Of a DNA stretch of 64,000 nt, positions 12,260 through 60,645 are shown piece by piece. The DNA lies in IMG/VR virus record IMGVR_UViG_3300021057_000274, positions 248,001 through 312,000 of that record. The stretch is one strand, 5' to 3'. Positions within the stretch are counted from its first letter, which is position 1, and every line of letters begins with the position of its first letter. A model generated the notes under the pieces. The model saw only the letters and a list, made by a program, of their open reading frames with translations, was not told where the DNA came from and did not search any database. The translations under genes and the position numbers were made by a program.

Positions 12260-12305
12260 GGTAACCACCTCCGCGGTAGACGCGGTTAGCACGGGAAAGC
12301 TCAAG

Positions 12306-15547: not shown

Positions 15548-16107
15548 CCAACAACTCAGATAACTCGCACGTTCTCAACGATCTCTTCAACGTCGGTGCC
15601 GCTCCGCCTCCTAAGGAGATCCAAGCGATCACCGACCCTGGCATCACGACCGCCCTCGTCCGTCCGTCGACCGGTGAGCGAGTCATCAGGCCTGAGGCTC
15701 CGCCAGCGGAAGAGGTGATCGCGGGTGAGGAGCGACTTGAGGATCTCGCGATCGACTCGAAGCTAGAACGGGTCCACGAGTCCGCGATCGAGGCTTACAA
15801 GTCACAGTTTAAGCTCTCTCAAGAGGTCGAGTCTCGCTTCTCAGCTAGAAACGCTGAGGTAGCCGCCCAGTACTTGAAGATCGCGCTCGACTCGGTCAGC
15901 CTGCGGGTTGACTCGAAGTTCAAGCGAAACAAGATCAAGCTCGCGCAGGAGAAGAAGGAGGAGGGGGCGAAGGGAAGGGGCACGATCCTCGTCGCGGACC
16001 GCAACGAGGTGCTTCGGGTCCTCAGTCAGGCGCTCCAGCAGAGCTCGCCGGCGGAGAAGACCGTCGAGGGTGAGGTGCTACCGGAGATGAAGAGTGAGGC
16101 TGAATGA
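15544..16107 (+). CDS. Probable terminase small subunit
   Basis: Helical protein between gp4 and terL; AEVAAQYLKIALD...ILVADRNEVLRVL pattern of jumbo-phage TerS. Confidence 0.6.
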   Translation: MTNNSDNSHVLNDLFNVGAAPPPKEIQAITDPGITTALVRPSTGERVIRPEAPPAEEVIAGEERLEDLAIDSKLERVHESAIEAYKSQFKLSQEVESRFSARNAEVAAQYLKIALDSVSLRVDSKFKRNKIKLAQEKKEEGAKGRGTILVADRNEVLRVLSQALQQSSPAEKTVEGEVLPEMKSEAE

Positions 16108-16801
16108 GCTCGTCGGAGTCAAGAAGCTCCAAAACTTTCGGACGGATGAGCTCGTCGACTTTCTAGATCTCTACACGCCCTACAAGCAATCTGGACGGGG
16201 TAATTTTTCGAGGGTCTTCGAGAAGGACGGAGAGATCTACAAGTTCTGGGCGCTTGACCCAGCTTATGAGCGCTTTGTCAAATATTGTTTGGCAAACAAG
16301 GGCAATAAGCATCTGCCGAGATTCTTATCTGACGTCAAGACCTTGACGGCGTTTCACACTAGGCACCGTGATCACCCGAGAAAGCTCAAGTACGTCAAGA
16401 TGGAGATCCTCGAGCCGTCTGAGATAAAGGACGCGTTCTTCAAGACCATTAACGATTACCTGTTCGGGCGTCCTCGTCGAGTGAGCGCCGACATCTTGAG
16501 GACTCGTGAAGAGGTATATCAAGAGTACGAGAAGCTTTACGGTAACAAGTATCAGAGCTTTCTTGAGACGGTTCTAGACGTGTGCGACCACGTGCGAAAG
16601 GGAGCTTCGTCGACCTTCTACCCCGACATCAGATCGGTAAACGTGATGGAGCGCGACGGGGTGCTAGTCCTCACGGATCCTGGGTATGACGAGAGGGAGA
16701 CGTACGACTGGGGAGACATCACTAGCCTCGAGGTTAGAAATCCCGACGAGCGAGTGAGCGGTCCGAAGCGTGACAAGAAAACTTTCAAGGGTACTCCATG
16801 A
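16094..16801 (+). CDS. Protein-kinase-like fold protein with cargo leader
   Basis: Gly loop GRGNFSRVF, IYKF, HLPRF, MEIL, catalytic PDIRSVNVM and VLTDP. Confidence 0.65.
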   Translation: MRLNELVGVKKLQNFRTDELVDFLDLYTPYKQSGRGNFSRVFEKDGEIYKFWALDPAYERFVKYCLANKGNKHLPRFLSDVKTLTAFHTRHRDHPRKLKYVKMEILEPSEIKDAFFKTINDYLFGRPRRVSADILRTREEVYQEYEKLYGNKYQSFLETVLDVCDHVRKGASSTFYPDIRSVNVMERDGVLVLTDPGYDERETYDWGDITSLEVRNPDERVSGPKRDKKTFKGTP

Positions 16802-17991
16802 AATTTGCCGCATTCCTGCAGCTGAACGAGGGCCTCTCAGACGACCTGGACAAGGCCGTCAAGCAACTTCTACCTCACTTGAAAGCGCTTGACTACAAGA
16901 GCACCGAGGAGAAGGTGCTCGACGCGGTGCAGCTCTTGCGAGACGGACTCGAGAGCGGAAAGATCTACAACGTCGACTATAACACCGCGAAGCAAGACCT
17001 CTCGCGCGCTCTCTCGCTGATCTGGGACGCGCAGTATAACCACAAGGTTGAGAACCACGACGGTAACACGAATAGGTGGGTATCTGAGAAGATCGGTCAC
17101 GACTTCTACTACACCAACGTCCAGCTCAACACGCTAGCCAAGGCCAAGCGCTACCTGGACAAGGTCGACCGTCAGCAGCTAGTCGCTGACCACGGGGAGA
17201 GCGCGGGGAAGATCATCGACGGCTTCAGGGACATGCTTGAGGCTGGATTAGTGTTCAACGAGGCGGTCAAGCAACTTAAGCCAAAGATCGTGATGGGACG
17301 CAAGCCAGCTCAAAACGCCGATCCGAACGCCTTCGTGTCGAAGCTGGGGAGCGTCGAGTCCCAGCAGCTGATTCACGACTCGTTGCTCAAGAGCGTTGAG
17401 GCTCAGCTAGACTCTTACGAGAAGAACATCAAGGCCTGGCTGCAAGGCCAGCTTGACCAGATCGAGAACGCAGGCGAGTACGAGTATCCGACACACCGGC
17501 AACGCGATCCGCAAACGATCTTTTTGGTCCAGCGTTGCTTCGAGTTCAAGCACGAGTACATCAACGGCAAGGAGCGGGGCGCCAGGTACTCGAACCTCAA
17601 GCTGAACGAGACGGGAAAGCACTTCCCAGCGAAAGAGGCGAAGCAGATGCGTGACTTCATCCAGACGCGCTTCCTCAACAAGGCGATCAAGAAGCTGAGC
17701 GACATCGTCGACAAGAAGGGTAACCTCGAGAAGATCGAGGAGCTCCCGCGTCGACCGGTCCACGTCAGCCGCGGCTCGGCGACGGTCGAGTGCGCCTTCA
17801 AGTTCTCCTTCGCCGACGGCTCTCACTTCTCGGTGATCAACAAGGCCGTCTCGAAGTTCTCCTACACAGGCAAGCCGTTCGACCAGTACCCGACCACCTT
17901 CCACGACGTCGTCTTTCCTGACGGCAGCAAGCTGCGGATTCCGTCAGAGGAAAAGATGGTCAAGGTCTTCACCACCGGGAAGAACGAGTGA
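16798..17991 (+). CDS. Hypothetical, putative capsid-packaged protein
   Basis: Leader MKFAAFLQLNE|G; long ORF. Confidence 0.6.
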   Translation: MKFAAFLQLNEGLSDDLDKAVKQLLPHLKALDYKSTEEKVLDAVQLLRDGLESGKIYNVDYNTAKQDLSRALSLIWDAQYNHKVENHDGNTNRWVSEKIGHDFYYTNVQLNTLAKAKRYLDKVDRQQLVADHGESAGKIIDGFRDMLEAGLVFNEAVKQLKPKIVMGRKPAQNADPNAFVSKLGSVESQQLIHDSLLKSVEAQLDSYEKNIKAWLQGQLDQIENAGEYEYPTHRQRDPQTIFLVQRCFEFKHEYINGKERGARYSNLKLNETGKHFPAKEAKQMRDFIQTRFLNKAIKKLSDIVDKKGNLEKIEELPRRPVHVSRGSATVECAFKFSFADGSHFSVINKAVSKFSYTGKPFDQYPTTFHDVVFPDGSKLRIPSEEKMVKVFTTGKNE

Positions 17992-18575
17992 AGCTCTCAA
18001 GCCTCCTCGAGGCCCCGCTCGTTGACGTCTCTTACCACAAGGGCGAGACGAGTGACCGAGACTATCAAGGCTCTGGCTTCTCAAAGGCGGATCTTCAAGT
18101 GATCTTGAAGAACATTCGTGAGGAGACCTATCTCCGAAAGCTCAAGAAGATCCCGTTCGATCTCTACGTTTACTTCATCGACGACGAGAGGTTGAACGCG
18201 TTAGGTAGCATTTTCCCCGAGCGACCGATCGCTCATGGAGAGCTGCGCAAGCACTTAGATAACGCGAGAGAGCACTCGAAGTCGGGATCGATCGCCACAA
18301 AGATTCACGGAACGATCGCCCTCTTCATCGGAGAAAAGATCCTCGCGAGGCTCGACAAGGAGCCCACCTCGGTTCACTTCGTCATGGGAGACAATTATTC
18401 GGATACCCACCCGATCGCTCCCACCCCGTGGATCGTCGTCCACCGCTTCCTCCACGCGGTAGCTCAAGATACCGAGATGCTCAGCGTGAAGCCGATCGAA
18501 AATCTCAGATCACTCATTAGCAAAAACTACCGCAAGCTCGTGAAGCATCTTTCGGGGAAGATCTACTACATCTGA
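17988..18575 (+). CDS. Cargo-leader protein with HxxxH motif, paralog of 45351..46172
   Basis: MKLSSLLE|APLVDV; WIVVHRFLH. Confidence 0.55.
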   Translation: MKLSSLLEAPLVDVSYHKGETSDRDYQGSGFSKADLQVILKNIREETYLRKLKKIPFDLYVYFIDDERLNALGSIFPERPIAHGELRKHLDNAREHSKSGSIATKIHGTIALFIGEKILARLDKEPTSVHFVMGDNYSDTHPIAPTPWIVVHRFLHAVAQDTEMLSVKPIENLRSLISKNYRKLVKHLSGKIYYI

Positions 18576-19489
18576 TGAACCTTCTCGAGATCCTCAACAA
18601 GCCAGCGGACTACAAGATCGACGTTGCCAAGAACGATCGCTTCGTCGCATCTGCGGTGATCAAGGGTCGAGAGATCGTCTTCGCCGTTGAGCTGATCGGG
18701 CGTGTGGATCCAGACTCAAAGTGGGTAGTGCGTGATGGTGATCGCGGGCAAGATATTTGGGAGATGTCGTTCGCCGAGATGCAACCCACCCACGCCGGGA
18801 TGAAGAAAGGCACCTATCAGCTCACCAAGTCTGGCGGTGAGTTCGAGGTCTTCGCGACCTGGCGAAAGTTCATGGAGGAGTTTCTCCAGCGCTACCATCC
18901 TGGCAAGATCGTCTTCACGGCCGACAAGGATCACAGCCGAGCTGATCTCTACGCCAAGCTGCTCAAGCGCTTTAACATGCCTGGCTACAAGGTTAATCGC
19001 GAGGAGTTCGGCAAGGTTGACAAGTTCGTGATCATCAAGGAGAGCCGCGAGTCTTACCAATATCCACCCTTCAAGAACGGCGAGATAGTTACGAGGGAGA
19101 ACATCAAGGACTGGGCAGACGTAAACGACGATCTCGGCGAGGTCGTTGACGAGCTCGGTTCAGATCTTAAACTTGTTTACGAACTTGCAAGTTATGAGTC
19201 GCTCGGCAAGGTAGCAGCTTGGTGGGATACCTTCGAGAGGGGCGGAATCAAGGCGCTCGCGGAGGATAAGTGGTGGTACGGCCTCGAGGTAGATCGAATC
19301 AACGACGTCGTCGAAGCGGTCAAGAAGGACAAGAAGATCTGGTTAGTCTTCGTCGCTGGCGATGCCGGCGAGACGATGGCAGCGAAGGGAGACGTGATCA
19401 CCGGTTATCACAGGCTAGCAGCATATAAGATCCTCGGTCTCAAGAAGATTCCGGTGATCTACGCTTACAGGGACGAAGATGTCAAGTAA
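18575..19489 (+). CDS. Two-module protein with C-terminal ParB/Srx-like domain
   Basis: Leader MNLLEIL; C-terminal VITGYHRLAAYKILGLKKIPVI. Confidence 0.55.
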   Translation: MNLLEILNKPADYKIDVAKNDRFVASAVIKGREIVFAVELIGRVDPDSKWVVRDGDRGQDIWEMSFAEMQPTHAGMKKGTYQLTKSGGEFEVFATWRKFMEEFLQRYHPGKIVFTADKDHSRADLYAKLLKRFNMPGYKVNREEFGKVDKFVIIKESRESYQYPPFKNGEIVTRENIKDWADVNDDLGEVVDELGSDLKLVYELASYESLGKVAAWWDTFERGGIKALAEDKWWYGLEVDRINDVVEAVKKDKKIWLVFVAGDAGETMAAKGDVITGYHRLAAYKILGLKKIPVIYAYRDEDVK

Positions 19490-44149: not shown

Positions 44150-45354
44150 GCTTGAAGTGGGGAACGATCGTTCCGCTCATCGGCGGGCTCACCTTGGCTG
44201 GAAAGCGAGCGACCGGCCAGGACCCAAACTTCCTCCTGACATATACGCCGTTCGGAGAGAACGAGAAGAACGTGCGCGCCTACTTCCCGAACGTTCCCTA
44301 TCACCAGCTCGACACCGAGGACCGCGGCGGCTTCGACGTCGCGGCGAACAGAGACGTTGACTTCGTTCAGGCCCTCTGTCCCTGCGCCGGACTCTCGCTG
44401 CTGAGCTCAGGCTCCCCCGAGCAGCGCGCTAAGCAAAACTACTGGATGCTCGAGACCGCCAAGTTCATGACGGGCGAGCTTCGTCCGCGGGTCTTCTGGG
44501 GCGAGAACGCTCCGGGTCTCTATAGCAACACCGGCGAGCACGTGCGTAACGAGCTCCGCCAGATCGGGGAGAGGAACGGCTACTCGTTCTCCGTCTACGC
44601 GACGTCAACTCACTTCCACGGAATTCCTCAGACCCGCAAGCGCACGTTCTACTTCTTCTGGCGTGACGGTGAGGCGCCGGTGATGGAGTACTACCGAAAG
44701 CCTGTCAAGAACTTCACCGAGTACATGCGTGAGGTGCCGAAGGACTCGATTCACCACACCGCCGACGACATCCAGGCGGCGCGTGACACTCTCAACACCA
44801 ACCCGTTCATCATGTTCCTCCAGGAGAAGCATGACGGCAAGGGCATCGAGAAGATGCGCGAGTGGCTGGTGCGAAAGGACATGAAGAGCTTCACCCTCAA
44901 CACTTACCTGTTGCTCAGCGAGCAGTTCGAGGAGTGCATGGACTGGCTGAAGCAGCGCGGCCACGACAAGCACCTTCGTCTCGCTCAAAAGGTCTGGGAG
45001 AAGGTGACCTCGAAGGGCGGCTTCTGGGACGGCAGCTTCCCGATGTATCGCGGCGACCTGATGTTCGCGACCCTCATCTCTCGGACGCTCTACGCGATTC
45101 ACCCTGAGGAGGAGCGCGTTCTGACGACACGCGAGATGATGCATCTGATGGGGATGCCGCATGACCTGCCGTTGGTGACGGGCGGCTTGAATCACATCTG
45201 CCAGAACGTGCCGGTGTCGACGGGCGCTGACATGACTAACGAGGTGATCGCTTACCTGAGGGGCGAGCGGGAGAGCAGCGGGGCGCGGTTCACGATGCAG
45301 AGCAACATCACCCAGCGCATTGACCACAGCGAGTCGGCGCTGCTAAGCTTTTAG
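44146..45354 (+). CDS. C5 DNA cytosine methyltransferase-like protein
   Basis: CPCAGLS (motif IV), GENAPG (VI), IPQTRKRTF (VIII), LTTREMMHLMGMP (IX), CQNVPV (X); ends ALLSF. Confidence 0.85.
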   Translation: MSLKWGTIVPLIGGLTLAGKRATGQDPNFLLTYTPFGENEKNVRAYFPNVPYHQLDTEDRGGFDVAANRDVDFVQALCPCAGLSLLSSGSPEQRAKQNYWMLETAKFMTGELRPRVFWGENAPGLYSNTGEHVRNELRQIGERNGYSFSVYATSTHFHGIPQTRKRTFYFFWRDGEAPVMEYYRKPVKNFTEYMREVPKDSIHHTADDIQAARDTLNTNPFIMFLQEKHDGKGIEKMREWLVRKDMKSFTLNTYLLLSEQFEECMDWLKQRGHDKHLRLAQKVWEKVTSKGGFWDGSFPMYRGDLMFATLISRTLYAIHPEEERVLTTREMMHLMGMPHDLPLVTGGLNHICQNVPVSTGADMTNEVIAYLRGERESSGARFTMQSNITQRIDHSESALLSF

Positions 45355-46172
45355 ATCCCCTGGTCGAACTTGGTGACGTAGACGCCCCTCGCTTCGGCTA
45401 GGATCTTCTCAAAGATCCTAGCTCCGCTCTCTGCGAGCTTATCTAAGCCTCGTTGAAGGACCTCGTTCTTCGCCTTGGCGAACTCGACCTTGTCCTTGAA
45501 CATGTATTGAGTGAAGAGCTCCGTGGTCAGCTCCTCTTGTTGCACGTCGATCAAGTGCTGCTTCGACTTCGTGATCACGAAGTTCTTGATGAACCAATCC
45601 ATGGGCGTAGAGTCCTCGCTAGGTTCGTCACCCCAGCGGCTTGAAGCCCAATCGTCGATCTCTTGCTCGTACTTCTCTAGCTCCTTGGCCATCTGTGACG
45701 TCGAGAGCGTGATGGTGTGGAGGAAGTCGTGCACGAATCCCCAACCCGAGTAGTGAGTGATGTCCTCGTACCCCCTCTTTGGTCCGTGATCCTCGAAGAC
45801 GTAGACGTTGATCGCGTTAGAGTGATAGGGCAGGAGCGCTTTGACACGCTCTGAAGAAGAGTTGATGAGATGTGCGATCGCAACGGCTAGATACTCGAAG
45901 TCAACCTTAAGGTAGAAGAAGTCGTTAGTCGCGTCGCGAATCCGCTCTGGGTTGTGTTGCTTAGCGTCTTTCCAGATCTCGTTGTAGGTAACGCCGCGCA
46001 CGAGGTTGTAGTAGATCGGCGTCTTGACCTTTCCGAGCACTCGCTTAGCGACCTTTAAGACCGACTCATCTGTCATCTTGCCGATCTTGGATTTCGCGTA
46101 GCGCGGCGCCCTGAGTTGAACGTGGTTGACGTCCTCTAGAGGCGCCTCTGTGAGGAGCTCAGAGATCTTCAC
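45351..46172 (-). CDS. Cargo-leader protein with HxxxH motif, paralog of 17988..18575
   Basis: MKISELLTE|APLEDV; WGFVHDFLH. Confidence 0.6.
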   Translation of the reverse strand: MKISELLTEAPLEDVNHVQLRAPRYAKSKIGKMTDESVLKVAKRVLGKVKTPIYYNLVRGVTYNEIWKDAKQHNPERIRDATNDFFYLKVDFEYLAVAIAHLINSSSERVKALLPYHSNAINVYVFEDHGPKRGYEDITHYSGWGFVHDFLHTITLSTSQMAKELEKYEQEIDDWASSRWGDEPSEDSTPMDWFIKNFVITKSKQHLIDVQQEELTTELFTQYMFKDKVEFAKAKNEVLQRGLDKLAESGARIFEKILAEARGVYVTKFDQGI

Positions 46173-46734: not shown

Positions 46735-49092
46735 ATGTCGATCCAAGTTACGAAGCGCAACGGAGAGCGCGAACCGCTCGACGTTGAGAAGATGCACCGG
46801 GTGTTGGAGTGGGCCTGCGAGGAGCTAGCAGGTGTTTCGGTCTCCGACATCGAGATGAAGTCCCACATTCAATTTTACGACGGAATCGCTACCTCAGAGA
46901 TTCACGACATCACCACCTCGGCGGCCGAGGACCTGATCTCGGAGGAGCGCCCCAACTACCAGTACGTCGCCGCGCGAATGATGATCTTCGACCTGCGGAA
47001 GAAGGTCTTCGGCTCGTACGAGCCCATCCGCCTTCTCGACATCGTCAAGCGCAACGCTGAGAGGGGCATCTACGACAAGAACATCCTGTCATGGTATACC
47101 GAGGAGGAGTGGCTCAAGCTAGGCTCCTATCTCAAGCATGAGCGTGACTTCAAGCTGACGGCGGCGGCGGTCAAGCAGATCAAGGATAAGTACCTCATCC
47201 AGGACCGGTCGACACGTACCTACTACGAGACCCCGCAGATCGCGTTCATGTTGATCGCGGCGACTGGCTTTCACAAGTACCCGAAGGCGACCAGGCTCCA
47301 GTACGTGCGCGACATGTACGACGCCATCTCGAAGTTTCAGGTCTCCCTCCCCACTCCGATCCTCGGTGGCCTTCGCTCGAGCATCAAGCAGTTCAGCTCG
47401 TGCGTCTTGATCGATGTCGGTGACAGCCTTGAGTCGCTGACCGACGCGACCAAGATGATGACCAAGTACGTCTCGAAGCGAGCCGGACTTGGCATCAACG
47501 GCGGGAGGATTCGTGCGCTCGGGTCGAAGGTCGGCAAGGGTGAGATCGTCCACACCGGCGTCACCCCGTACTATCGGATGTTCGAGTCGGCGATCAAGAG
47601 CTGTTCAGCTGGCGGCATCCGTGACGCCGCGGCGACGCTCTACGCTCCCGTTTGGCATCGCGAGATCGAGGACATCATGGTCCTCAAGAACAACAAGGGC
47701 ACTCACGAGACCCGAGTGCGTCGCCTTGATTACGCGATCCAGTGGGACACCTATCTGCTTCGCCGGGCGGCCAAGAAGCAACCGATCACCCTGTTCTCTC
47801 CCCATGAGGTTCCTGATCTCTATGAGGCGTACTTTGGCAAGGATCGCAAGAAGTTCGAGGAGCTCTACGAGAGCTACGAGAGAGATCCAGCGATCAAGTA
47901 CAAGAAGGTGGTTGACGGGCGTGAGCTACTGACGACGTTTCTCAAGGAGTCACAAGAGACCGGTCGTCTCTATGGGTTCCTCGCGGACAACGTCAACCTC
48001 CACACCCCGTTCAAGGACCCGATCTTCATGTCGAACCTGTGCGTCGAGATCTGTCTCCCGACGACTCCAGTTCTCAACAAGTACTCGAACTTTGAGGAGC
48101 GTGACGACTTCGCCAAGGACGCGACGGTAGACTTCGAGGGACTCATCCAGCTCTGCACGCTCGCGGCGGTTAACCTCGGGAGCCTCAACCTCGACGAGAC
48201 GCACGACATGGAGAAGCGGATGGATCTCCTCGTGCGCTTCCTCAACGAGCTGATCGACTATCAGGACTACCCGGTGCCTCAAGCCTACCGAGCGACGATG
48301 AAGTACCGTCCGCTCGGCATCGGCGCGATCAACTACGCGTACCTCCTGGCGAAGAACGGACTCAAGTACTCCGACCCGGAGAGCCACAACCTGACTCACC
48401 GTGTCGCCGAGCAGATGTACTACTTCGCGCTCAAGGCGTCAAACAACTTGGCCAAGGAGCGAGGCGCTTGCAACGGCTTCGTTGACACGATCTACGCGGA
48501 CGGCAAGCTCTTGATCGACACCTACGCCAGGACGGTCGACGAGGTGCACACCGAAAAGCTCCATCTCGCGTGGGACGAGCTTCGCCGAGAGGTCAAGGAG
48601 CACGGCGTGCGCAACGCGACGCTCCTCGCTTTCATGCCGTCAGAGTCATCTAGCTCTGTTTCAAACGCGACGAGCGGGGTCGATCCGATCCGCTCCGTCG
48701 TCACCCGAAAGGCGAACAAGAAGACGTCGTTCGTTCAGGTCGCGCCCGAGGCGATGCGATTGAAGAACCAATATCACCTGCTCTGGGACATGACCGCGAG
48801 GGACATGGACGGCGTCATCAAGAACATGGCCGTGCTTCAAAAGTTTACGTGCCAGTCGATCTCGACCAACTTCTCCTACAACCCAGAGCACTACCCCGAG
48901 AAGAAGATCCCTCTCGAGGTGCTGATCAACCACTTTCTCCTGGCGACAAAGCTAGGCCTGAAGACCAGGTACTACGTCAACACCAAGGGAGAGCGTGACC
49001 ACACCGAGGAAGCTGAGAAGCAACCCGCCACCGTCGTTGAAGTCACCCCTGAGCTAGCCCCCGAGGGTGACTGCGACTCTTGCAAGATCTGA
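46735..49092 (+). CDS. nrdA: Ribonucleotide reductase class Ia alpha subunit
   Basis: ATP cone VTKRNGERE, QFSSCVLI, SNLCVEICLP, CTLAAVNLG, MPSESSS, C-terminal CDSCKI. Confidence 0.97.
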   Translation: MSIQVTKRNGEREPLDVEKMHRVLEWACEELAGVSVSDIEMKSHIQFYDGIATSEIHDITTSAAEDLISEERPNYQYVAARMMIFDLRKKVFGSYEPIRLLDIVKRNAERGIYDKNILSWYTEEEWLKLGSYLKHERDFKLTAAAVKQIKDKYLIQDRSTRTYYETPQIAFMLIAATGFHKYPKATRLQYVRDMYDAISKFQVSLPTPILGGLRSSIKQFSSCVLIDVGDSLESLTDATKMMTKYVSKRAGLGINGGRIRALGSKVGKGEIVHTGVTPYYRMFESAIKSCSAGGIRDAAATLYAPVWHREIEDIMVLKNNKGTHETRVRRLDYAIQWDTYLLRRAAKKQPITLFSPHEVPDLYEAYFGKDRKKFEELYESYERDPAIKYKKVVDGRELLTTFLKESQETGRLYGFLADNVNLHTPFKDPIFMSNLCVEICLPTTPVLNKYSNFEERDDFAKDATVDFEGLIQLCTLAAVNLGSLNLDETHDMEKRMDLLVRFLNELIDYQDYPVPQAYRATMKYRPLGIGAINYAYLLAKNGLKYSDPESHNLTHRVAEQMYYFALKASNNLAKERGACNGFVDTIYADGKLLIDTYARTVDEVHTEKLHLAWDELRREVKEHGVRNATLLAFMPSESSSSVSNATSGVDPIRSVVTRKANKKTSFVQVAPEAMRLKNQYHLLWDMTARDMDGVIKNMAVLQKFTCQSISTNFSYNPEHYPEKKIPLEVLINHFLLATKLGLKTRYYVNTKGERDHTEEAEKQPATVVEVTPELAPEGDCDSCKI

Positions 49093-49093
49093 G

Positions 49094-50251
49094 ATGACCA
49101 ACACCGTCTTCAACCTCAACAAGGTTGACCTCAACGAGCAACCGATGTTTTTCGGCAAGAAGGCGAACATCGCTCGCTACGACCAGGAGAAGTATCCCGC
49201 CTTTTCAAAGGCTACCAAGACCATGAAGAGCTTCTTCTGGAACCCCGAGGAGATCAACCTCCAGAAGGACGCATCGGACTTCAAGGCGTTATCAGACCAC
49301 GAGAAGCACATCTTCACGAAAAACATCGCGTACCAGGTGCTGCTTGACAGCGTTCAGGAGCGCGGCCCGCTCTATGCCTTTTTGCCGTGGTGCACTCTCC
49401 CGGAGCTCGAAGCCTCACTGATCTGGTGGGCGGCGTTCGAGCAGATCCACAGCCAGTCCTACCAATGGATCTTGCAAAACCTCTTTCCGGACCCCGCGAC
49501 GATCTTCGACACGATCATGGACGACTCGAACATCATGACCCGGGCCGGCGCGATCATCAAGTACTACGATGACTTCGTCCAGTACTCCGAGCAGTACCGT
49601 GTGCTGGGGCCGGGCACTCACCGCCTGATCACGTATCCTGAAGGGCCGCACGCGCCCCAGACCAAGGAGGACTTCGAGCTCTCGGAGTACGAGCTGAAGC
49701 GCAAGCTCTACCTCGCGCTCGTCTCGGTCTACGCTCTCGAGTCGATCCGCTTCTACGTCTCGTTCGCGTGCAGCTTCGCGTTCGGGCAGCAAGGCAAGAT
49801 GAAGGGGAACGCAGACATCATCAAGCTGATCGCGAAGGATGAGGCGCAGCACGTCGGGATCACAGTAAACATCCTCCGCAACTTGATGCGCAAGGAGGGC
49901 GACAAGGACTTCGTCAAGATCGCCAAGGACGAGGAGGAAACGGTCTACCAGATCTTCGACGAGGTGGTCAGCCAAGAGAAGGAGTGGGCGGCATACCTGT
50001 TCAAGGATGGCTCGATCGTCGGCTTGAACGAGACGCTCCTCTGTCAGTATCTCGAGTATCTGGCGAATAAGCGCCTTCGCGGTCTCGGCTTGAAGTCGCG
50101 CTATGACGCGAACGTCAATCCGTTCGGCTGGATCACGACCTGGCTCTCCTCCGAGGACGAGCAGGTGGCCCCGCAGGAGAAGGAGGTTACCTCCTACCTG
50201 GTGAACGTGCTCGACACGAACGTCAACGAAGAAAACCTGATCGAAATTTGA
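49094..50251 (+). CDS. nrdB: Ribonucleotide reductase class Ia beta subunit
   Basis: FFWNPEEI, LLDSVQ, EQIHSQSY, ALESIRFYVSFACSFAF, DEAQH, VAPQE. Confidence 0.96.
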   Translation: MTNTVFNLNKVDLNEQPMFFGKKANIARYDQEKYPAFSKATKTMKSFFWNPEEINLQKDASDFKALSDHEKHIFTKNIAYQVLLDSVQERGPLYAFLPWCTLPELEASLIWWAAFEQIHSQSYQWILQNLFPDPATIFDTIMDDSNIMTRAGAIIKYYDDFVQYSEQYRVLGPGTHRLITYPEGPHAPQTKEDFELSEYELKRKLYLALVSVYALESIRFYVSFACSFAFGQQGKMKGNADIIKLIAKDEAQHVGITVNILRNLMRKEGDKDFVKIAKDEEETVYQIFDEVVSQEKEWAAYLFKDGSIVGLNETLLCQYLEYLANKRLRGLGLKSRYDANVNPFGWITTWLSSEDEQVAPQEKEVTSYLVNVLDTNVNEENLIEI

Positions 50252-50252
50252 C

Positions 50253-50597
50253 ATGAAGTTAAACGAGCTCCAGCGAAAATTCTATCACGTGACGTTCGCC
50301 CAGAACGTGTCAAGCATCTTACGGCATGGGTTGGGTGGCAAGAGAGCTACCCAGCGCTGGAGCTTCTCGAATGGAAGGGTTTGTCTAGCCGATTCGATTG
50401 AGAAGGCTAAGAGATATGCGAACTCGGTCGGACAGCCAGATGAGTGGGATGGAAAGTTCGTTGTTATAGAGGTCGAGATTCCAGATGAGTCGAAACTCAG
50501 CCAAGACTCGAACATCGACGGCAAGACCGCCGATGGATACTTTGAGTATGACGGCGTGATTCCTCCCTCACATCTCAAGGTGCACGACACTTACTAG
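50253..50597 (+). CDS. ADP-ribosyltransferase/KptA-fold protein with cargo leader
   Basis: FYHVT...SILRHGL...VCLADS...VIEVEI...IPPSHL; leader MKLNEL. Confidence 0.65.
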   Translation: MKLNELQRKFYHVTFAQNVSSILRHGLGGKRATQRWSFSNGRVCLADSIEKAKRYANSVGQPDEWDGKFVVIEVEIPDESKLSQDSNIDGKTADGYFEYDGVIPPSHLKVHDTY

Positions 50598-50626
50598 TTT
50601 GAGATGGGTGGAGCTAAATATGCTCC

Positions 50627-51025
50627 ATGAAGATCTCCGAGCTCTACGAGTCAAGGTGGATTGAGAGCCCCAGGCTTGACGTCTCTACTGAGGGTAACTC
50701 CAAGCGAGTCTTCTTCACCGCTAAGCTGAAGAAGGACCACCGTCGTGATTGGGACAAGGACGAGGTAGCTGTCGAGGCGACCGTTGACCTTGACAAGCCA
50801 GTCGCTCGCATCAACCAGATCAACGCGTGGATGTCACACCGTAGCCTCGGGCAAGAGCTTCTCTCGCACATCCTCTTTCACCTCAAGAAGAACGGCTATA
50901 AGAAGGTGACCGCTTACACCGAGCGGTTCAACTTCAATCCGCAATCCATGGTCAAGCGGCTCGGAGCTGTTGAGACAGGGAAGACCGAGCACGGCGTGAC
51001 CTGGGAGTGGGACCTTGAGGCTTGA
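50627..51025 (+). CDS. GNAT-like protein with cargo leader
   Basis: MKISELYE|S; INQINAW...RSLGQELLSHI; TAAATA at 50615-50620. Confidence 0.55.
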   Translation: MKISELYESRWIESPRLDVSTEGNSKRVFFTAKLKKDHRRDWDKDEVAVEATVDLDKPVARINQINAWMSHRSLGQELLSHILFHLKKNGYKKVTAYTERFNFNPQSMVKRLGAVETGKTEHGVTWEWDLEA

Positions 51026-52001
51026 TGAGATCTCGCAGCGCGCCAGCAGCTGGGAGGATCTGCCGTTCAGAGCTGCTACCGGTGAGGGGCCCTCTCTAGA
51101 GGACGTCGTTCCTGAGCGCGCCCCGAACGGCGATTTCATCTTCTACCACGGTACGTCTCTCACAACCGCCGAGAAGATCGTCAAGGACAAGATGATCATG
51201 CGAGACGACCTCGGTTACTCAGGGATAGGTACTACCCGCGGAGCCGTTAGCGTCTACGGCATCATGAAAGCTTCTAAGGAAAATCTCCGTCGCAGACTCA
51301 AGATGGTGCCAGGGATGATGCATGACGACCCAAAGGCTGAAAAGAGCGCGGTTCTTCGAGTGCGCATCTCCCGAGATTGGTTCAAGGCCCATCCAGATTC
51401 GGTCTCTAGAGAGACCGGAGGCTCTGGAAAGAACCAGTTCTTGATTCGCCCGCCGCGCGGAGAAAAGGGTGTGCCGCTAGAGCACGCTGAGATCGTACGG
51501 GCAGCTGGAGAGGAGCTGCGCGAGACGGTCAAGAGCCAGGACGTCGGAGTCTTCGTCACTTCTGCCTTCGAGAACGCGGGGATCAAGAACGTCAAGATCG
51601 TCGGGTCGCTGATGCGAAAGGGCAAGGGAAACGACATCGACGTCAAGGTCGACGCACCAGGGAGATTTGAGGCCGTCGAGTCAAGGGCCTTCAGCGTCGC
51701 TCACAAGCTGTCCAAGATGATCGGCGAGTACTCGAGAGGAAAGCATGATCGCGTCGACGTCTTCTTGAAGATGCAACCAGAGTGGGTCAATGACCGCGCG
51801 ACCGCTAAGCTGATCATCAGGCGGTACCTGGATGACCATGACGAAAACTTCCCGAACTACGGCGGATCTGACGGGATCTATCATGAGCCTGAGGTCGTGG
51901 ACATCAACAAGGTCAAGTACTTGATCATCTCCGTCGGCGGAGGGTGGATGATCCAACGTGGATATTGGCTCCATGAACCTGAAGATACGGTCAAGGGGTA
52001 A
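51015..52001 (+). CDS. ART-like domain fused to Pol-beta-type nucleotidyltransferase domain
   Basis: FYHGTS...AVLRVRI N-terminal module; IVGSLMRKGKGNDIDVKV and RVDVF C-terminal module. Confidence 0.6.
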   Translation: MRLDEISQRASSWEDLPFRAATGEGPSLEDVVPERAPNGDFIFYHGTSLTTAEKIVKDKMIMRDDLGYSGIGTTRGAVSVYGIMKASKENLRRRLKMVPGMMHDDPKAEKSAVLRVRISRDWFKAHPDSVSRETGGSGKNQFLIRPPRGEKGVPLEHAEIVRAAGEELRETVKSQDVGVFVTSAFENAGIKNVKIVGSLMRKGKGNDIDVKVDAPGRFEAVESRAFSVAHKLSKMIGEYSRGKHDRVDVFLKMQPEWVNDRATAKLIIRRYLDDHDENFPNYGGSDGIYHEPEVVDINKVKYLIISVGGGWMIQRGYWLHEPEDTVKG

Positions 52002-52028: not shown

Positions 52029-52391
52029 ATGAGCGTGAACTGGAAGCGCTGGAGAGCGAAGGTCAAGCTCTACTTCATTAGGCTCTTCGTGTTGTGGCTT
52101 CCGTTCTCGCTGGGTTGCTTGGTCGCGATCCCGGTCTCCCTCGTCGCCGTTCTCAGCAACAGCACCTACGCGAAAAACATGTTGCTCGGCATGGATCGGC
52201 TCGCGGCGTCGGTCCTCCATTGGACCGGCAAGAACACGATCAGCGCCGAGTGCGGTGCGGTTCTACAACCCCCGCTTACCTTCGCTGAGCTCTCGATGCG
52301 TTGCATCTTCTGCATGCTTCTCTGCAGGATGATCGAGCTGTTTGACGCTGGACACTGTAAAAACAACGCGATCGATGAAAAACTCATCTAG
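52029..52391 (+). CDS. Membrane protein, paralog of 309..635
   Basis: TM helix; MDRLAA...TISAECG...CIFCMLLC...GHC; TAAATA at 51999-52004. Confidence 0.6.
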   Translation: MSVNWKRWRAKVKLYFIRLFVLWLPFSLGCLVAIPVSLVAVLSNSTYAKNMLLGMDRLAASVLHWTGKNTISAECGAVLQPPLTFAELSMRCIFCMLLCRMIELFDAGHCKNNAIDEKLI

Positions 52392-52457: not shown

Positions 52458-52781
52458 ATGACTGCAGGAAAGCTTTGGACCGTCGAGGTCACCGATACGG
52501 GCGGCGGTGTCCTTCGCCTCGATTCAGCGTTGTACGAGGATGTGAACTACAACGCCGTTGCGCCGCACAACGCGTCACACGTCGTTCAGGTTCGCCAGAA
52601 CCTCATCAAGGACATGAAGCCCTTCACGACTAGCAACACCGCCGTCAAGGCGTCGTACAAGGTCGAGAAGTTTCTCATCGCAGGTGACCTTGCGGCTCAC
52701 GTCGCTAAGTCGCTCACGACGCTCACCTCTGACGCGGGTACCGACATCGGTGCCGCGGGTTACACCGTCAGCGCCGCCTAA
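52458..52781 (+). CDS. Late small protein, probable virion component
   Basis: TAAATA at 52407-52412, RBS AGGAG, followed by terminator. Confidence 0.55.
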   Translation: MTAGKLWTVEVTDTGGGVLRLDSALYEDVNYNAVAPHNASHVVQVRQNLIKDMKPFTTSNTAVKASYKVEKFLIAGDLAAHVAKSLTTLTSDAGTDIGAAGYTVSAA

Positions 52782-52843: not shown

Positions 52844-53191
52844 CTAAGATTTTATCGCGTAGTTGATCTCGTGGTACGCGCGCTCAAGATTTTCAAGCGC
52901 TTCTGCGATCGTGTTATGGGTGTCGATGAGATAGCCCTTATAGTTGGACGGGGCATGATCGCCGTGCGCGATGCCGTTAGGCTTCTTGGGGAAGTCGGCT
53001 TCATGCCTCAGGCGATTCGCGATCTCACGATGCTTAGCAGCCTCCGTGAGAAGAGCCTTTTGATCACAGATCGTGGCGAGGGCTTTCGCGAGCCTGTCGT
53101 ACTCTTTGAAGCCCTCCATGTCACGTCCCTTTTTAGGTTTCGAGGGAATTCCCTTGGGCCAGGCTTCAACGAGAAAAGCTTTAAGTTTCAT
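52844..53191 (-). CDS. Putative capsid-packaged internal protein
   Basis: MKLKAFLVE|A; RBS AAGGA; minus-strand TAAATA at 53209-53214. Confidence 0.65.
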   Translation of the reverse strand: MKLKAFLVEAWPKGIPSKPKKGRDMEGFKEYDRLAKALATICDQKALLTEAAKHREIANRLRHEADFPKKPNGIAHGDHAPSNYKGYLIDTHNTIAEALENLERAYHEINYAIKS

Positions 53192-53404
53192 GGTGATTTC
53201 CTTTCGTCTATTTACCGCAAGTTCTTTCCTATAGCCCAACCATTAGCCAAATAAGCAGCCAATTCAATTATCACCGCCGAGGGCTTTTGGGATAATGTGA
53301 TGGCGCTCTTTGTAACCTTTGATCTTACGGGCTTTGGATCGATGACAGATCTCGAGATACCATTTTGTGTACTTATTATCTAAGAACATGATACTATACC
53401 CGAT

Positions 53405-54712
53405 ATGGCGATCGTAAACAAAAAGCGGCTCAAACAATATCTAGAAGCAGAGCAAAACGTGCTTTTTCGGGGTGCGCACGGCATCGGCAAAACGGCTATC
53501 GTTAAGGAGATATTTGCCGAGGGCGGAGGGAAGTGGAAATATTTTTCAGCGTCCACTATGGATCCTTGGGTTGACTTTGTCGGTGTGCCGAAAGTGATTA
53601 CAGATTTGTCTGGAAATCATTCTCTAGAGCTTGTTCGCCCTACCGAATTTGATGATGTTGAATACTTATTCTTCGACGAGTTCAACCGCGCGCCTGACAA
53701 GGTGCTCAACGCGACGATGGAGCTCATCCAGTTCAAGAGCATCAACGGTCACAAGCTCAAGCGCCTCAAGGTGATCTGGGCGGCGATCAACCCCGAGGAC
53801 GACGCCGACACCTACAAGGTCAACCACCTCGACCCCGCGCACCTCGATCGATTTCAAGTTCACATCGACCTGCCGTACGACGTTGACGTTGACTACTTCA
53901 AGGGAAAGTATCCCACGCTGTGGAAGGCGTTCGTTGACTGGTGGAAGGATCTCCCGGAGGACGTCAAGAAGGAGGTCTCACCTCGGCGCCTCGACTACGC
54001 CGCGACCGCTTACCAGAAGGACTTTCGCCTCGAGGACTTTCTCCCGTTCAAGTCGAACGTCAAGAAGCTTCGAGACATGCTCAAGTCGATCCCGTTCGCC
54101 GAGGAGCTGAGCCAGATCAAGAACGGCACCGAGGCGCACTCGTTCCTCAAGAACCCGAACAACACCCTGCAGCTCCTCAAGATGGTGCGGCAGAACGACT
54201 CGAACGCGACAGACTTCTTCACGAAGTACGCGTACGGCATGCCCCAGGAGCTTGCGGCGCCGTTCACCGAGCTCCTCGAGGCCAGGAACATGGGCTTCAT
54301 GCGGAAAGAGGTCACCACCCTAGCAGCCATCCTGGAGAAGATTCCAGTCACTGGCGCTAGCTCGTCGGGTACCCTCGTCGCCGGAATGATCAACGCCGTC
54401 GATTGGGACGTCATCATGAAGGGGAAGTCACCCGAGAACGAGATGCGCGCCCTGCTGACGACGAAGGGGCATCTGGTCTCCAGGTTCACGAATCGAGCGA
54501 GCGACGCCTTTCAGAACGCGACCAAAGCGCAGCTCGAGCGCATCTTGTGGGGCCCCCTCGGGAGGGTCGGCAACGAGATCTCGAACTTCCAGGTCATGCT
54601 CGCCGCGGCTAGCAAGATCAGAGCGTTTGACAACGCGAACGAGGTGCGGATGATCAACGCCAAGCTCGAGGCGACCGGGCTCTTGGACTGGAAAATCATC
54701 TCTCCGCCGTGA
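53405..54712 (+). CDS. MoxR-like AAA+ ATPase
   Basis: GAHGIGKT, LFFDEFNRA, WAAINP, LDPAHLDRF, VSPRR. Confidence 0.88.
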   Translation: MAIVNKKRLKQYLEAEQNVLFRGAHGIGKTAIVKEIFAEGGGKWKYFSASTMDPWVDFVGVPKVITDLSGNHSLELVRPTEFDDVEYLFFDEFNRAPDKVLNATMELIQFKSINGHKLKRLKVIWAAINPEDDADTYKVNHLDPAHLDRFQVHIDLPYDVDVDYFKGKYPTLWKAFVDWWKDLPEDVKKEVSPRRLDYAATAYQKDFRLEDFLPFKSNVKKLRDMLKSIPFAEELSQIKNGTEAHSFLKNPNNTLQLLKMVRQNDSNATDFFTKYAYGMPQELAAPFTELLEARNMGFMRKEVTTLAAILEKIPVTGASSSGTLVAGMINAVDWDVIMKGKSPENEMRALLTTKGHLVSRFTNRASDAFQNATKAQLERILWGPLGRVGNEISNFQVMLAAASKIRAFDNANEVRMINAKLEATGLLDWKIISPP

Positions 54713-56055
54713 TCAAGCCTGTCCCCGAGAAGGAGCTCCTCAAGATCGCGGCGGCTCTAGAGGACTACCACAAGATCTTCTACACCTTCTGGGAGATGTC
54801 GGACGTCTTGTATGACGACTCTCTCCCGACCGCGGCCGTCGAGTTCTTGAAGGGGGAGCGAAAGCCTCGGCTGTTGATCAACGAGGAGTTCTGGAAGAAG
54901 CTCAACCACCGGGAGCGGCTGTTCGTCGCTTGCCACGAGTGCCTCCACGTCATCCTCGATCACGGACAACGCAACGGGAGGGAGGTCAAGGGATCGACCC
55001 CGCACCTGGTCAACGTCGCCCAGGACATCACGATCAACGAGATGATCGTCGACGTCTTCGGTTACGAGCGCAAGGACTTCAGGAAGTGGAAGGATCTCTG
55101 CTGGATCGACACGTGCTTCGATGACCCGACGATCGTCAAGCGAAACCAGAAGTTCACGTATTACCTCGAGATGCTGATCAAGCACGGGAAGAAAGATCTT
55201 CCGAAGGTCTTCGATCGGCACCAGCCCTCTCAGTCTGACGAGAAGAAGTCGGGATCTCAGCCCAGTGACCCGAAGCCAAGCCCCGGCGACCCGAAGTCTG
55301 CTGATCCTGCGCCGACGGGTGAAGAGGAGTCTCAAGAGCAGCGTGACGCCAGGCAATCGGCGGCTGAGAAGCTCGCGGCTGATCTCTCGCCTGAGGAGAT
55401 CCATGACATCATGGAGGCTGGCGAGCTGGGCGGTGACCTGGCCGCCGCGATAAACGCGGTCCTCGGCGACAAGAAGGAGCGAGCTCGGGTGAGGTTCGCG
55501 AAGATGGTCGCTCGGCTGAAGCGGACACGAATGAAGCTCAAGGAGAGCGAATTCGAGACGTTCTCCCGAGATGATCGGCGCTTCGACGATGTCGTGCGAT
55601 CGTACGGCGCCGTGCTTCCCGGGAAGGGTGAGGCCTTCAGGCCCGCCAAGGATCGCATCCTCGCGTACGTCTACATGGACGTCTCGATGTCGTGCGTCGC
55701 GTATCTGCCGATCTTCGAGAAGATCTGGGCCGCGTTTGACGCCGAAAAGGACATCTTCGAGTGTGAGACGTACATCTTCGACACGAAGGTGACCCCTCAC
55801 AAGCCGGGAGACGACGCGCGCGTCGGCGGAGGGACCTGGTTCAACATCATCGAGGAGAGCGTTCTCGGGCGCAAGGCCGAGACAGGCCGCTACCCCGACG
55901 CGGTCTTCGTCATCACCGACGGCGACTGCGCGCCGAGTACCGCGGTCGACCCGCTGGTGCCTGAGCGATGGGTCTGGCTGCTGATCGATCGCGCCGAGCT
56001 CAAGTACATCCCGAAAGGATCTAGGTGGTACTGGATCAAGGACGTAGTTTTCTAA
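54709..56055 (+). CDS. HExxH metallopeptidase plus VWA domain protein (DUF2201-like), MoxR partner
   Basis: ACHECLHVILDH, VNVAQDITIN, YMDVSMS, GGGTWF, VITDG. Confidence 0.85.
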   Translation: MIKPVPEKELLKIAAALEDYHKIFYTFWEMSDVLYDDSLPTAAVEFLKGERKPRLLINEEFWKKLNHRERLFVACHECLHVILDHGQRNGREVKGSTPHLVNVAQDITINEMIVDVFGYERKDFRKWKDLCWIDTCFDDPTIVKRNQKFTYYLEMLIKHGKKDLPKVFDRHQPSQSDEKKSGSQPSDPKPSPGDPKSADPAPTGEEESQEQRDARQSAAEKLAADLSPEEIHDIMEAGELGGDLAAAINAVLGDKKERARVRFAKMVARLKRTRMKLKESEFETFSRDDRRFDDVVRSYGAVLPGKGEAFRPAKDRILAYVYMDVSMSCVAYLPIFEKIWAAFDAEKDIFECETYIFDTKVTPHKPGDDARVGGGTWFNIIEESVLGRKAETGRYPDAVFVITDGDCAPSTAVDPLVPERWVWLLIDRAELKYIPKGSRWYWIKDVVF

Positions 56056-59743: not shown

Positions 59744-60310
59744 ATGGATCTCCTCCGTGAACTTATCAACGTTTCAGAAGCTACAGAGAAAGAGCTGATC
59801 GACCAGTTTGAGGACTGGGACGACAAGCAGCTCAAGCAAGCCGCTGAGATGGGCAACGAGGAGGCCGGGCGTGAGCTGTCTCGACGCGCAAAGTTCGGCA
59901 CTAGAAACTACGACAAGCCGGGTCAAAAGCCCTTCATGGAGGCGACGATCGACGCCTTCAAGCAGATGACCGAGATTAAGTTTGATCCAGATCGCACCGA
60001 TCCGGCCGACATCTTCATCGAGATGCGCAAGATCATCGCTCAGGTGGCATATACCTTCCTGGTACACGAGAAACAGCAACACGACAAGCGCCAAGCGCAT
60101 GATGAGGACGAGGACAAGACCGAGTTCAACTTCTCGTTCGACGCGCTCGCCGACGAATGCCAAGACGTGTGGCGTCAAGTCAAGACCTTCGCGGATGACA
60201 GAATGAACAGCCACAGTGACTGGCTCGAGTACATCCATGACGGCACCTTCCTAGATCTTCCGAAGGATCCTCCGCTGTCAGGTTTTGCTGGAAAAAAGAA
60301 GTCCAAGTGA
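59744..60310 (+). CDS. Putative capsid-packaged protein, leaderless late gene
   Basis: MDLLRELINVSE|A; TAAATA at 59733-59738. Confidence 0.6.
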   Translation: MDLLRELINVSEATEKELIDQFEDWDDKQLKQAAEMGNEEAGRELSRRAKFGTRNYDKPGQKPFMEATIDAFKQMTEIKFDPDRTDPADIFIEMRKIIAQVAYTFLVHEKQQHDKRQAHDEDEDKTEFNFSFDALADECQDVWRQVKTFADDRMNSHSDWLEYIHDGTFLDLPKDPPLSGFAGKKKSK

Positions 60311-60645
60311 AGCTCAAGACGTTTCTAGCTGAGGGGAAGGGCAAGCTCACCGAGAGGGACGTCGGCCGAGACGCTGAGGTGATCTTCCGCATCACCACGA
60401 ACGCCGTGAAGTTCGACGACGACATCTATGGCTTCGGCTACTTTGGTAAGATCATCGAGGTCACTGACAAGCACGTAGTGTTCGAGGCGGAGCGCGCTGG
60501 TCAGTATACGGCTTACACCGCTCCTGGAAACGGCGTCGAGCTCAAGGGCAGTCACAAGATCAAGATCACGATGGATCTAGATAAGGCGAGTCGCGTTGAC
60601 GCGCATCCAGACGATGACTTCATCGCAATTCACTTTGCTGCTTAA
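60307..60645 (+). CDS. Putative capsid-packaged protein
   Basis: MKLKTFLAE|G, very like the T4 internal-protein leader MKTYQEFIAE. Confidence 0.6.
   Translation: MKLKTFLAEGKGKLTERDVGRDAEVIFRITTNAVKFDDDIYGFGYFGKIIEVTDKHVVFEAERAGQYTAYTAPGNGVELKGSHKIKITMDLDKASRVDAHPDDDFIAIHFAA

Follow-up and report, generated by a model that had tools for sequence, protein, structure and literature searches.

A cassette of leader-bearing proteins with ADP-ribosyltransferase, GNAT and candidate nucleotidyltransferase modules beside nrdB in a soil phage genome

We examine three open reading frames (ORFs) that lie directly after nrdB in a 64,000-nucleotide stretch of jumbo phage DNA (the window), which spans bases 248001-312000 of one 389,331-bp IMG/VR virus contig (GC 0.58; record IMGVR_UViG_3300021057_000274). 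The virus record has a completeness of 98% (CheckV), and the DNA originates from soil metagenomes. A search of sequencing runs for this DNA gave two soil-metagenome DNA sets and no RNA run. The NrdA protein of the phage shares 60% identity with that of the Ralstonia jumbo phage RsoM2USA and about 48% with its counterparts in the Rak2/CBB/GAP32 group. An initial reading of the letters alone (the sequence-only reading) had described the three ORFs as a cassette for an ADP-ribosyltransferase (ART), a GNAT-like protein and a fusion of an ART-like module to a nucleotidyltransferase (NTase), each bearing a leader of the kind found on phage head cargo. The three same-strand ORFs lie exactly where it placed them, and its diagnostic motifs are all present, namely YHVT (ORF1 residues 11-14), YHGT (ORF3 residues 44-47) and the linker EELRET (ORF3 residues 166-171). 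Three details need correction: the spacer of the proposed GS-x9-DID motif in ORF3 is 8 residues long (G197-S198...D207-I208-D209), not 9; the start codon of ORF3 is TTG; and ORF3 shares 11 nt with ORF2. The features of the cassette, in window coordinates, are these:

49067-50251, + strand: nrdB (ribonucleotide reductase small subunit), from matches to phage nrdB
50253-50597, + strand: ORF1, 114 aa, with an ATG start one base past the nrdB stop
50614-50620, + strand: CTAAATA, late-promoter-like, 6 nt before the ORF2 ATG; fits a genome-wide nTAAATA-(4-6 nt)-start pattern
50627-51025, + strand: ORF2, 132 aa, ATG start
51003-51007, + strand: Shine-Dalgarno sequence GGGAG of ORF3, 7 nt 5' of the TTG and within the ORF2 3' end, read directly
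51015-52001, + strand: ORF3, 328 aa, TTG start, with an 11-nt overlap with ORF2
51015-51044, + strand: ORF3 leader, residues 1-10, MRLDE..., with the TTG start and the leader pattern
51045-51524, + strand: ORF3 N-domain, residues 11-170; ART fold (62 relatives, profile, AlphaFold 2 [AF2], Foldseek, VIA)
51510-51527, + strand: linker EELRET, residues 166-171, with a candidate prohead-protease L-x-E site (LRE-170) between the modules
51528-52001, + strand: ORF3 C-domain, residues 172-328, probable minimal Pol-beta-superfamily NTase
51603-51641, + strand: C-domain motif G197-S198-x8-D207-x-D209
51756-51758, + strand: third carboxylate of the C-domain, D248

The first 21 kb of the window form a morphogenesis block (head-tail adaptor, sheath stabilizer, tail tube, large terminase). 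The cassette lies downstream of this block, immediately 3' of nrdA/nrdB in a nucleotide-metabolism neighbourhood. The ORF2 ATG (50627) is 13 nt from a GGAG at 50610-50613, which fits initiation without a classical Shine-Dalgarno sequence. An out-of-frame ATG at 50620-50622, 6 nt past the same GGAG, opens a short ORF only.

Folds of the three cassette proteins

The folds of ORF1, ORF2 and the N-domain of ORF3 can be assigned with high confidence. In ORF1, a 9-residue leader (MKLNE...) is followed by a minimal ART-fold domain with a 104-residue core. Foldseek ranks KptA/Tpt1 first for its AF2 model (mean predicted local distance difference test score [pLDDT] 74.6; E 2e-4, probability 1.0), and VIA-align likewise places KptA first (Z 9.5, root-mean-square deviation 2.9 over 86 residues), with all 50 of the top 50 chains being ARTs. 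Structure prediction thus bears out the ART/KptA fold proposed from the letters alone. At the level of single sequences, phmmer searches of ORF1 and ORF3 against PDB sequences returned nothing useful, and only profiles reached ARTs; for ORF1, a five-sequence profile matched KptA (0.016) and DarT (0.022). In Pfam, ORF1 touches PARP (E 0.004) below the cut-off. The PTS_2-RNA model (PF01885, gathering threshold 26 bits) matches neither ORF1 nor ORF3, and its best score in the genome is 12.9 bits, for a protein designated L018.

The candidate triad of ORF1 is H12 (in YHVT), Y55 and E98, and the segment R35-W36-x-F38-S39 is conserved. H12 is invariant across five ORF1 relatives. Where ORF1 and P0004 have Glu (E98), P0005 has I and KVP40.0290 has G. 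The alignment with KptA takes in the NAD lobe alone (chain residues ~86-180), with no counterpart of the RNA lobe, and therefore we regard ORF1 as KptA-like in fold but not as a Tpt1. Close relatives are few: a word search found two (P0004 and P0005), tblastn against isolated phages gave weak KVP40-group matches only, and a profile scan of IMG/VR found none. Outside the window, the 304-aa protein L018 (G000 375356-376270) contains an ORF1-like segment (pairwise E 1e-6) together with a weak PTS_2-RNA match, a leader-like N-terminus and a late-type motif. This paralogue-like protein is a candidate for further ART-like cargo.

The small protein encoded by ORF2 begins with its own leader (MKISE...) and continues as a RimI-like GNAT acetyltransferase fold. 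Ten of the ten structural neighbours of its Atlas model (pLDDT 0.71) are GNATs, mostly RimI-like (TM 0.74-0.78 over 107-127 residues), and the earlier description of this protein as GNAT-like is therefore sound as to fold. The Pfam model Acetyltransf_1 (gathering threshold 20.7 bits) gives ORF2 13 bits (E 0.13) and gives residues 1-130 of its relative P0002 18 bits (E 0.0037). The region corresponding to the acetyl-CoA motif reads H-R-S-L-G-Q-E, in which the R and G of R/Q-x-x-G-x-G/A are present and the final G/A is absent. Neither the word search nor the IMG/VR profile scan found relatives of ORF2, which is 53% identical to the N-half of P0002.

The N-domain of ORF3 represents a more widespread family. 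A word search found one distant ORF3 relative and tblastn against isolated phages found no match; an exhaustive search of 1.8 billion representatives recovered 62 relatives of the N-domain. In an alignment of these proteins (A2), the near-invariant residues are D30, P33, Y44-H45-G46-T47, G70, T73, Y/F81 and E133-x-G-G, and the triad itself is retained almost throughout (H45 in 60 of 61 members, Y/F81 in 60 of 61 and E133 in 58 of 59). The family profile matches cholix (0.004) and Tpt1 (0.005) in the PDB, with the His strand and the Tyr region aligned. The AF2 model of the domain has a pLDDT >90, and its top VIA hits are all ARTs (KptA Z 7.4, RhsP2 6.7, TreTu 6.5, diphtheria toxin 6.5, exotoxin A 6.3). 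Foldseek matches KptA, pertussis S1 and cholix, Arr is also among the structural neighbours, and those in BFVD are small phage ART-like proteins. Given these results, the YHGT module is ART-like in fold, as had been suspected, and carries a conserved H-Y/F-E triad, and its residue conservation suggests a family of the H-Y-E division that is probably catalytically active. No Pfam model matches this family at cut-off. Weak PTS_2-RNA matches occur in 13 of the 61 members (best E 0.015), and a few members weakly touch Tox-ART-HYD1, PARP, ART-PolyVal or DarT.

Members of this family are found both as standalone proteins, of about 150 aa, and as the C-end of a MuF/minor capsid protein 2 protein (P0014), and they also lie beside other domains, including NUDIX (P0020), ADPrib_exo_Tox (P0030), ART-PolyVal (P0038) and type IB topoisomerase (P0027). 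In P0021 and P0036, the family ART directly adjoins CCA-adding/poly(A)-polymerase heads with HD domains, and P0024 (2564 aa) combines it with a GNAT, a true KptA domain and a domain like that of ORF1. The giant proteins that hold homologous domains range from 1616 to 3053 aa. Of particular relevance to the cassette is P0002 (280 aa; positions 1256-2098 of L001, a 2.5-kb ENA contig), in which an ORF2-like GNAT is fused to an ORF3-type ART and the chain ends at the linker. P0002 has no NTase, and the gene that follows it is syntenic with window 52458-52781; the NTase domain therefore looks like an addition in the present phage, as does a membrane-protein gene at 52029-52391. A frameshift that would fuse ORF2 and ORF3 into a P0002-like protein is an unnecessary assumption, since ORF3 has its own Shine-Dalgarno sequence, TTG start and family-type leader. 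The region 666-1259 of L001 was suspected by eye of encoding an R-S-E ART, has no Pfam support and is not claimed here.

Three independent lines of evidence place a domain boundary at the EELRET linker: the N-domain relatives P0002, P0007 and P0008 end there, P0063, the sole C-domain relative, begins at this point, and the pLDDT of the AF2 model falls there. The prohead protease may also cut at LRE-170 within this linker. Beyond it, the C-domain conforms to the Pol-beta superfamily motif h-G-[GS]-x(7-13)-[DE]-h-[DE]-h (V196-G197-S198-x8-D207-I208-D209-V210), with D248 in addition. The exhaustive search yielded P0063, a standalone protein of 27% identity, as the sole relative, and in this protein G-S-x8-D-x-D and the third Asp are conserved, as is a block at the C-terminus, VKYLI..GGG..GYW. 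Pfam matches P0063 below the cut-off (NTP_transf_2 E 0.011, Polbeta 0.028) and ORF3 itself not at all. The order of secondary-structure elements fits a Pol-beta core in a model with a pLDDT of 50-65, and Pol-beta NTases make up eight of the ten Atlas neighbours (TM 0.42-0.47), with HEPN/NTase and HepT/Polbeta proteins as the nearest clusters. A C-domain profile matched no NTase in the PDB, and hhalign found no similarity between the C-domain and CCA-enzyme heads. Thus, the GS-DID motif of the proposed NTase module stands and is kept in P0063, and weak Pfam and structural-neighbour matches make the fold itself probable only; on balance, we consider it a good deal likelier than not that the C-domain is a minimal Pol-beta NTase. 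Among the 1.8 billion representatives, no other protein was found that joins an ART to a minimal NTase as ORF3 does. P0009 was considered as a second such fusion and rejected, since its C-part shows no significant similarity and has no GS/DxD motif.

Leaders, prohead protease and a late-promoter-like motif

All three cassette proteins open with M-[KR]-[LI]-x-E. We scanned the 389-kb genome with the pattern M-[KRDNT]-[LIF]-x(1-2)-[ED]-[LIF] and took the expectation from the internal frequency of the same pattern. The leader occurs in 23 of 553 ORFs where 1.7 would be expected, which amounts to a 13-fold N-terminal enrichment, and the leader reported for the three genes is therefore real and far above chance. 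Every one of the 23 leader ORFs has [LI]-x-E within its first 14 residues, ending at residue 5 in 15 of them. The candidate sites in the cassette are LNE-5 (ORF1), ISE-5 and LYE-8 (ORF2) and LDE-5 (ORF3). ATG, GTG and TTG starts are all used, and the leader codons vary between genes while the peptide is retained. Such synonymous variation argues that selection acts on the peptide.

These features recall phage T4, whose internal proteins share only a capsid targeting sequence (CTS) that directs them to the prohead core and is removed after Glu by the protease gp21 (PMC3012670). T4 Alt, which is targeted to the prohead core in the same way, is trimmed at ITE-6 and LTE-619 (PMC5694885), and head-packaged ARTs have been argued to be widespread (PMC9503650). 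The present genome encodes a gp21-type prohead protease (Peptidase_S77, PF03420, 101 bits, E 1e-29) at G000 236766-237176, and many of its leader genes are orphans wedged among late structural genes for the head-tail adaptor, tail tube and terminase. Similar tags occur outside this genome on P0002, P0005, P0008, P0009 and the neighbours on L001. Many standalone relatives of the ORF3 N-domain family in other phages carry a CTS-like tag just ahead of a conserved Trp, and KVP40.0290, from a true T4-like phage, combines a CTS-like N-terminus with an ORF1-like domain.

A further feature of the locus is the CTAAATA that precedes ORF2. The motif nTAAATA lies 4-6 nt ahead of a start codon 20 times in the genome, against about 0.2 expected by our own arithmetic from the 99 TAAATA sites present. 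The genes that follow are mostly structural, and they include those for a baseplate wedge, a 2855-aa virion structural protein, a lysozyme-domain giant, a head-decoration-like protein and the sheath stabilizer. The motif is enriched among leader genes (5 of 23, versus 15 of the remaining 530; Fisher p 8e-4). Its position before ORF2, together with this enrichment, fits late synthesis of ORF2 and ORF3 alongside the proheads. If nTAAATA acts in the manner of the T4 late promoter TATAAATA, mRNAs made late would have no 5' leader, or almost none. Examples of the motif within the window are those at 50614-50620, in the 9110-9116 region (before 9122) and before 59744, 21036 and 22349.

Further leader-bearing genes are found throughout the window. 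About 12 more orphan window genes carry the same leader or a second type, MK-[LF]-K-x-F-L-x-E, which is even nearer to the T4 CTS. They are likely to be further head cargo, and tblastn of two other leader proteins against isolated phages gave no match. The regions that hold further leader genes, without Pfam matches or isolated-phage relatives, are:

3790-8183: leader-gene region
10556-13328: leader-gene region
16094-19489: leader-gene region
45351-46172, - strand: leader-gene region
59744-60645: leader-gene region

Just downstream of the cassette, on the opposite strand, the longest ORF of the gene at 52844-53239 (- strand) begins 16 codons before an internal leader Met (MKLKAFLVE...). Its true start is probably at 53191, which would give a leader-bearing protein of 115 aa. 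A 57-aa ORF at 53264-53437 (- strand) has a low GC content at third codon positions (0.48) and an HNH-like motif and overlaps the start of an AAA ATPase gene; it is possibly a homing endonuclease remnant. The region 53405-56055 encodes this AAA (MoxR-like) ATPase followed by a DUF2201_N metallopeptidase/VWA-like protein, a pair that is conserved in phages.

Possible functions and competing explanations

We favour, at somewhat better than even probability, the interpretation that the cassette encodes enzymes for the covalent modification of host molecules, which would be targeted to the head by the CTS-like leader, trimmed, injected and active in early host modification. In such a scheme, at least ORF2 and ORF3 would be made late, from the late-type promoter, and the tag would dock the proteins onto the scaffolding core of the prohead. 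The gp21-type protease would then clip the tag at [LI]-x-E and might also separate the two modules of ORF3. Entering the cell along with the DNA, the mature enzymes would draw on NAD+, acetyl-CoA and NTPs to modify host proteins or RNA ends, in the service of early-infection takeover or counter-defence. Packaging, cleavage, injection, substrates and targets are elements that we infer. Packaging of the cassette proteins is plausible, with a chance that we put at about even, because the leader is CTS-like, the genome encodes a gp21-type protease, a late-promoter-like motif precedes ORF2, and relatives occur as MuF fusions or within polyvalent proteins. Furthermore, the natural occurrence of both an ART-minimal NTase fusion and a GNAT-ART fusion argues that these activities serve a common target or pathway.

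Several observations weigh against this interpretation. None of the three ORFs matches a Pfam family at cut-off. The Glu at the position of E98 is not conserved in P0005, KVP40.0290 and XaC1_497, and so ORF1 may be a binding protein or may use another mechanism; some mono-ARTs and KptA variants likewise lack this Glu. The leaders of ORF1 and ORF3 are short, and that of ORF1 runs directly into the first ART strand. Moreover, ORF1 has no late motif and abuts nrdB, which in T4 is an early/middle-type gene. Confidence in the C-domain model is low, and most of the PDB neighbours of this model are generic alpha/beta sandwiches, an NTase appearing no higher than Z 4.8. A complex prediction for ORF2 with ORF3 residues 8-172, prompted by P0002, scored 0.01, which we list here as evidence neither way.

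The strongest competing explanation, which we consider unlikely but well worth attention, retains the same folds and dispenses with packaging. The proteins would be made in the infected cell, as T4 ModA and ModB are, and would be partly co-transcribed with nrdAB, while the shared N-terminus would be a short amphipathic helix retained for a different purpose, for instance in folding or in the context of translation initiation, or as the hallmark of a recombining family of gene cassettes. The arrangement of ORF1 agrees with this, given that its ATG follows the nrdB stop by one base with no promoter-like motif or clear Shine-Dalgarno sequence, as does the location of the cassette in a nucleotide-metabolism neighbourhood outside the morphogenesis block. 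However, such an explanation would leave unaccounted for a leader that matches the features of the T4 CTS and always comes with [LI]-x-E, in a genome with a gp21-type protease. It also sits poorly with the interleaving of leader genes among late structural genes, their enrichment for the late-type motif, and the MuF-fused or polyvalent contexts of the ART relatives. Finally, the synonymous codon variation in the leaders points to selection on the peptide.

A less probable explanation, which we regard as doubtful, is that the cassette constitutes an RNA-end repair kit, packaged or not, in which the ARTs would remove 2'-phosphates or cap 5'-phosphates with ADP-ribose and the NTase would restore 3' ends or tag them. 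In concert with the phage RNA ligases, such a kit would counter host defences that cleave tRNA or other RNA. Tpt1/KptA, including nucleic-acid complexes, is indeed the best structural neighbour of both ART domains, and weak PTS_2-RNA matches occur in P0005 and L018 as well as in the 13 members of the ORF3 N-domain family. Neighbours of the family include CCA/poly(A)-polymerase heads (P0021, P0036) and a true KptA domain (P0024). In addition, three genes of the RNA-ligase family and one for a CCA-adding enzyme are present in the genome, which has no canonical KptA, and a role of KptA in jumbo-phage RNA repair has been described (PMC9503650). The genes concerned are:

G000 335420-335875, 246778-247404, 329055-329573 and 118941-119300: RNA-ligase-family genes (three) and CCA-adding enzyme

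Against this stands the absence, from both ART domains, of the N-terminal RNA-binding lobe that bears three of the four Tpt1 catalytic residues; both align with KptA only over chain residues ~86-180. The ORF3 N-domain instead has a toxin-like H-Y/F-E triad of the type associated with transfer to proteins or bases. The C-domain is minimal, without the body and tail domains that bind tRNA and without profile similarity to CCA heads, and the GNATs that neighbour ARTs in polyvalent proteins are RimI-like protein acetylases.

A more far-reaching variant, to which we give slightly less credence still, sees in this genome a 'disassembled polyvalent protein', that is, about two dozen orphan enzymes each addressed to the prohead by a tag of 5-10 residues. 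The prohead protease would cleave ORF3 at LRE-170, releasing the ART and the minimal NTase as free proteins, and the KptA-like ARTs would act on the phosphate ends of nucleic acids, so that with the NTase they would form a head-delivered kit for repairing or capping RNA or DNA ends. If true, such a kit would already be in place when host nucleases strike.

It is very improbable that one or more modules lack catalytic activity and act instead as decoys or binders (such as a binder of NAD+ or ADP-ribose, or an inhibitor directed at a host NAD-dependent defence), since the variable E98 position and very small 104-residue core of ORF1, and the P0009 C-part that occupies the position of the NTase without a GS/DxD motif, are set against an ORF3 N-domain triad that is almost invariant over 61 members and three NTase carboxylates that are kept at 27% overall identity.

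Relation to known systems

The enzymes that a phage injects determine the first minutes of an infection, and few of them have been studied; examples are T4 Alt, IPI and the N4 virion RNA polymerase. It is already known that phage enzymes are injected with DNA and that ART, GNAT and Pol-beta NTase domains serve as virion effectors. What is new here is an ART family without a Pfam model, whose 62 representatives recur in MuF fusions and polyvalent proteins, a so-far unique ART-minimal NTase fusion, a GNAT-ART Rosetta-stone link and, if delivery proceeds as we propose, polyvalent-type modules that are tagged one by one in the manner of T4. A leader this compact and easy to recognise could allow the whole cargo set of a jumbo phage to be listed from sequence, and could be used to load foreign proteins into capsids. 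The general picture of injected effectors is extended by these findings, not changed.

Among individual enzymes, both cassette ARTs have Tpt1/KptA as best structural neighbour (Z 9.5 and 7.4) and share with it a [YF]-H-x-T first strand. Tpt1 itself is two-lobed, and its N-terminal RNA lobe bears the Arg-His-Arg of the catalytic tetrad. Unlike Tpt1/KptA, neither ORF1 nor the ORF3 ART has this RNA-binding lobe with its Arg-His-Arg. The ORF3 ART also resembles cholix, exotoxin A, diphtheria toxin and the Rhs/Tre toxins, as judged by the cholix profile match (E 0.004), a fold similarity of Z 6-6.7 and a Glu at the expected place. However, it differs from the diphtheria toxin-like ARTs in its low identity (about 15%), in the replacement of the first Tyr by Gly70 and in the lack of a receptor-binding/translocation part, such that the similarity is in fold only. 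Compared with those enzymes, the family has features of its own, in that its N-terminus is extended (W..P..G..P...D-x-P-P) and the Glu is followed by a Gly-rich loop. It is also distinct from Pfam ART-PolyVal (Tox-ART-HYD2, H-Y-D), which matches two of 61 members, weakly. The C-domain is similar in size to the MNT antitoxins of HEPN-MNT systems and to the NTox45-like NTases of polyvalent proteins, with which it has in common G-S-x8-D-x-D and a third Asp after a long helix. In contrast to these, it has no HEPN partner, is joined to an ART, ends in a C-terminal extension of its own (VKYLI..GGG..GYW) and falls short of the Pfam cut-off.

With regard to the mode of delivery, two systems bear comparison. 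As in T4 Alt and the internal proteins, we find a short acidic amphipathic N-terminal tag with [LI]-x-E, a gp21-type protease and an ART among the candidate cargo, and, as with the T4 internal proteins, the genes concerned are rapidly evolving orphans with nothing but the tag in common. T4 Alt is an R-S-E ART of the Alt/VIP2 type of about 70 kDa, whereas the ARTs here are small and H-Y-E/KptA-like. About two dozen genes here carry the tag, and their products are putative head cargo. The second system is that of the polyvalent proteins of phages and conjugative elements. For those of virions, Iyer et al. (2017, PMC5512222) name as protein-modifying domains ARTs and the RimI-like GNATs that typically neighbour them, together with kinases and minimal Pol-beta NTases. 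The cassette has the same repertoire as polyvalent proteins and MuF effectors, with direct homologues of the ORF3 N-domain and an ORF1-like domain in giant proteins and a homologue of the ORF3 N-domain at a MuF C-end. Given that ART, GNAT and Pol-beta NTase are thus described polyvalent modules (PMC5512222), and that the family ART adjoins CCA-type NTases in two giants, the suggestion that the combination is unusual holds for the exact fusion, which is so far unique, and less so for the assortment of activities. Unlike polyvalent proteins, in which 2-15 domains form one polypeptide, the cassette consists of separate genes for proteins of 114-328 aa with their own leaders, among which ORF3 has two domains. 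The cassette would link effector delivery of the T4 kind, by tag and protease, with that of the polyvalent proteins, by one giant chain.

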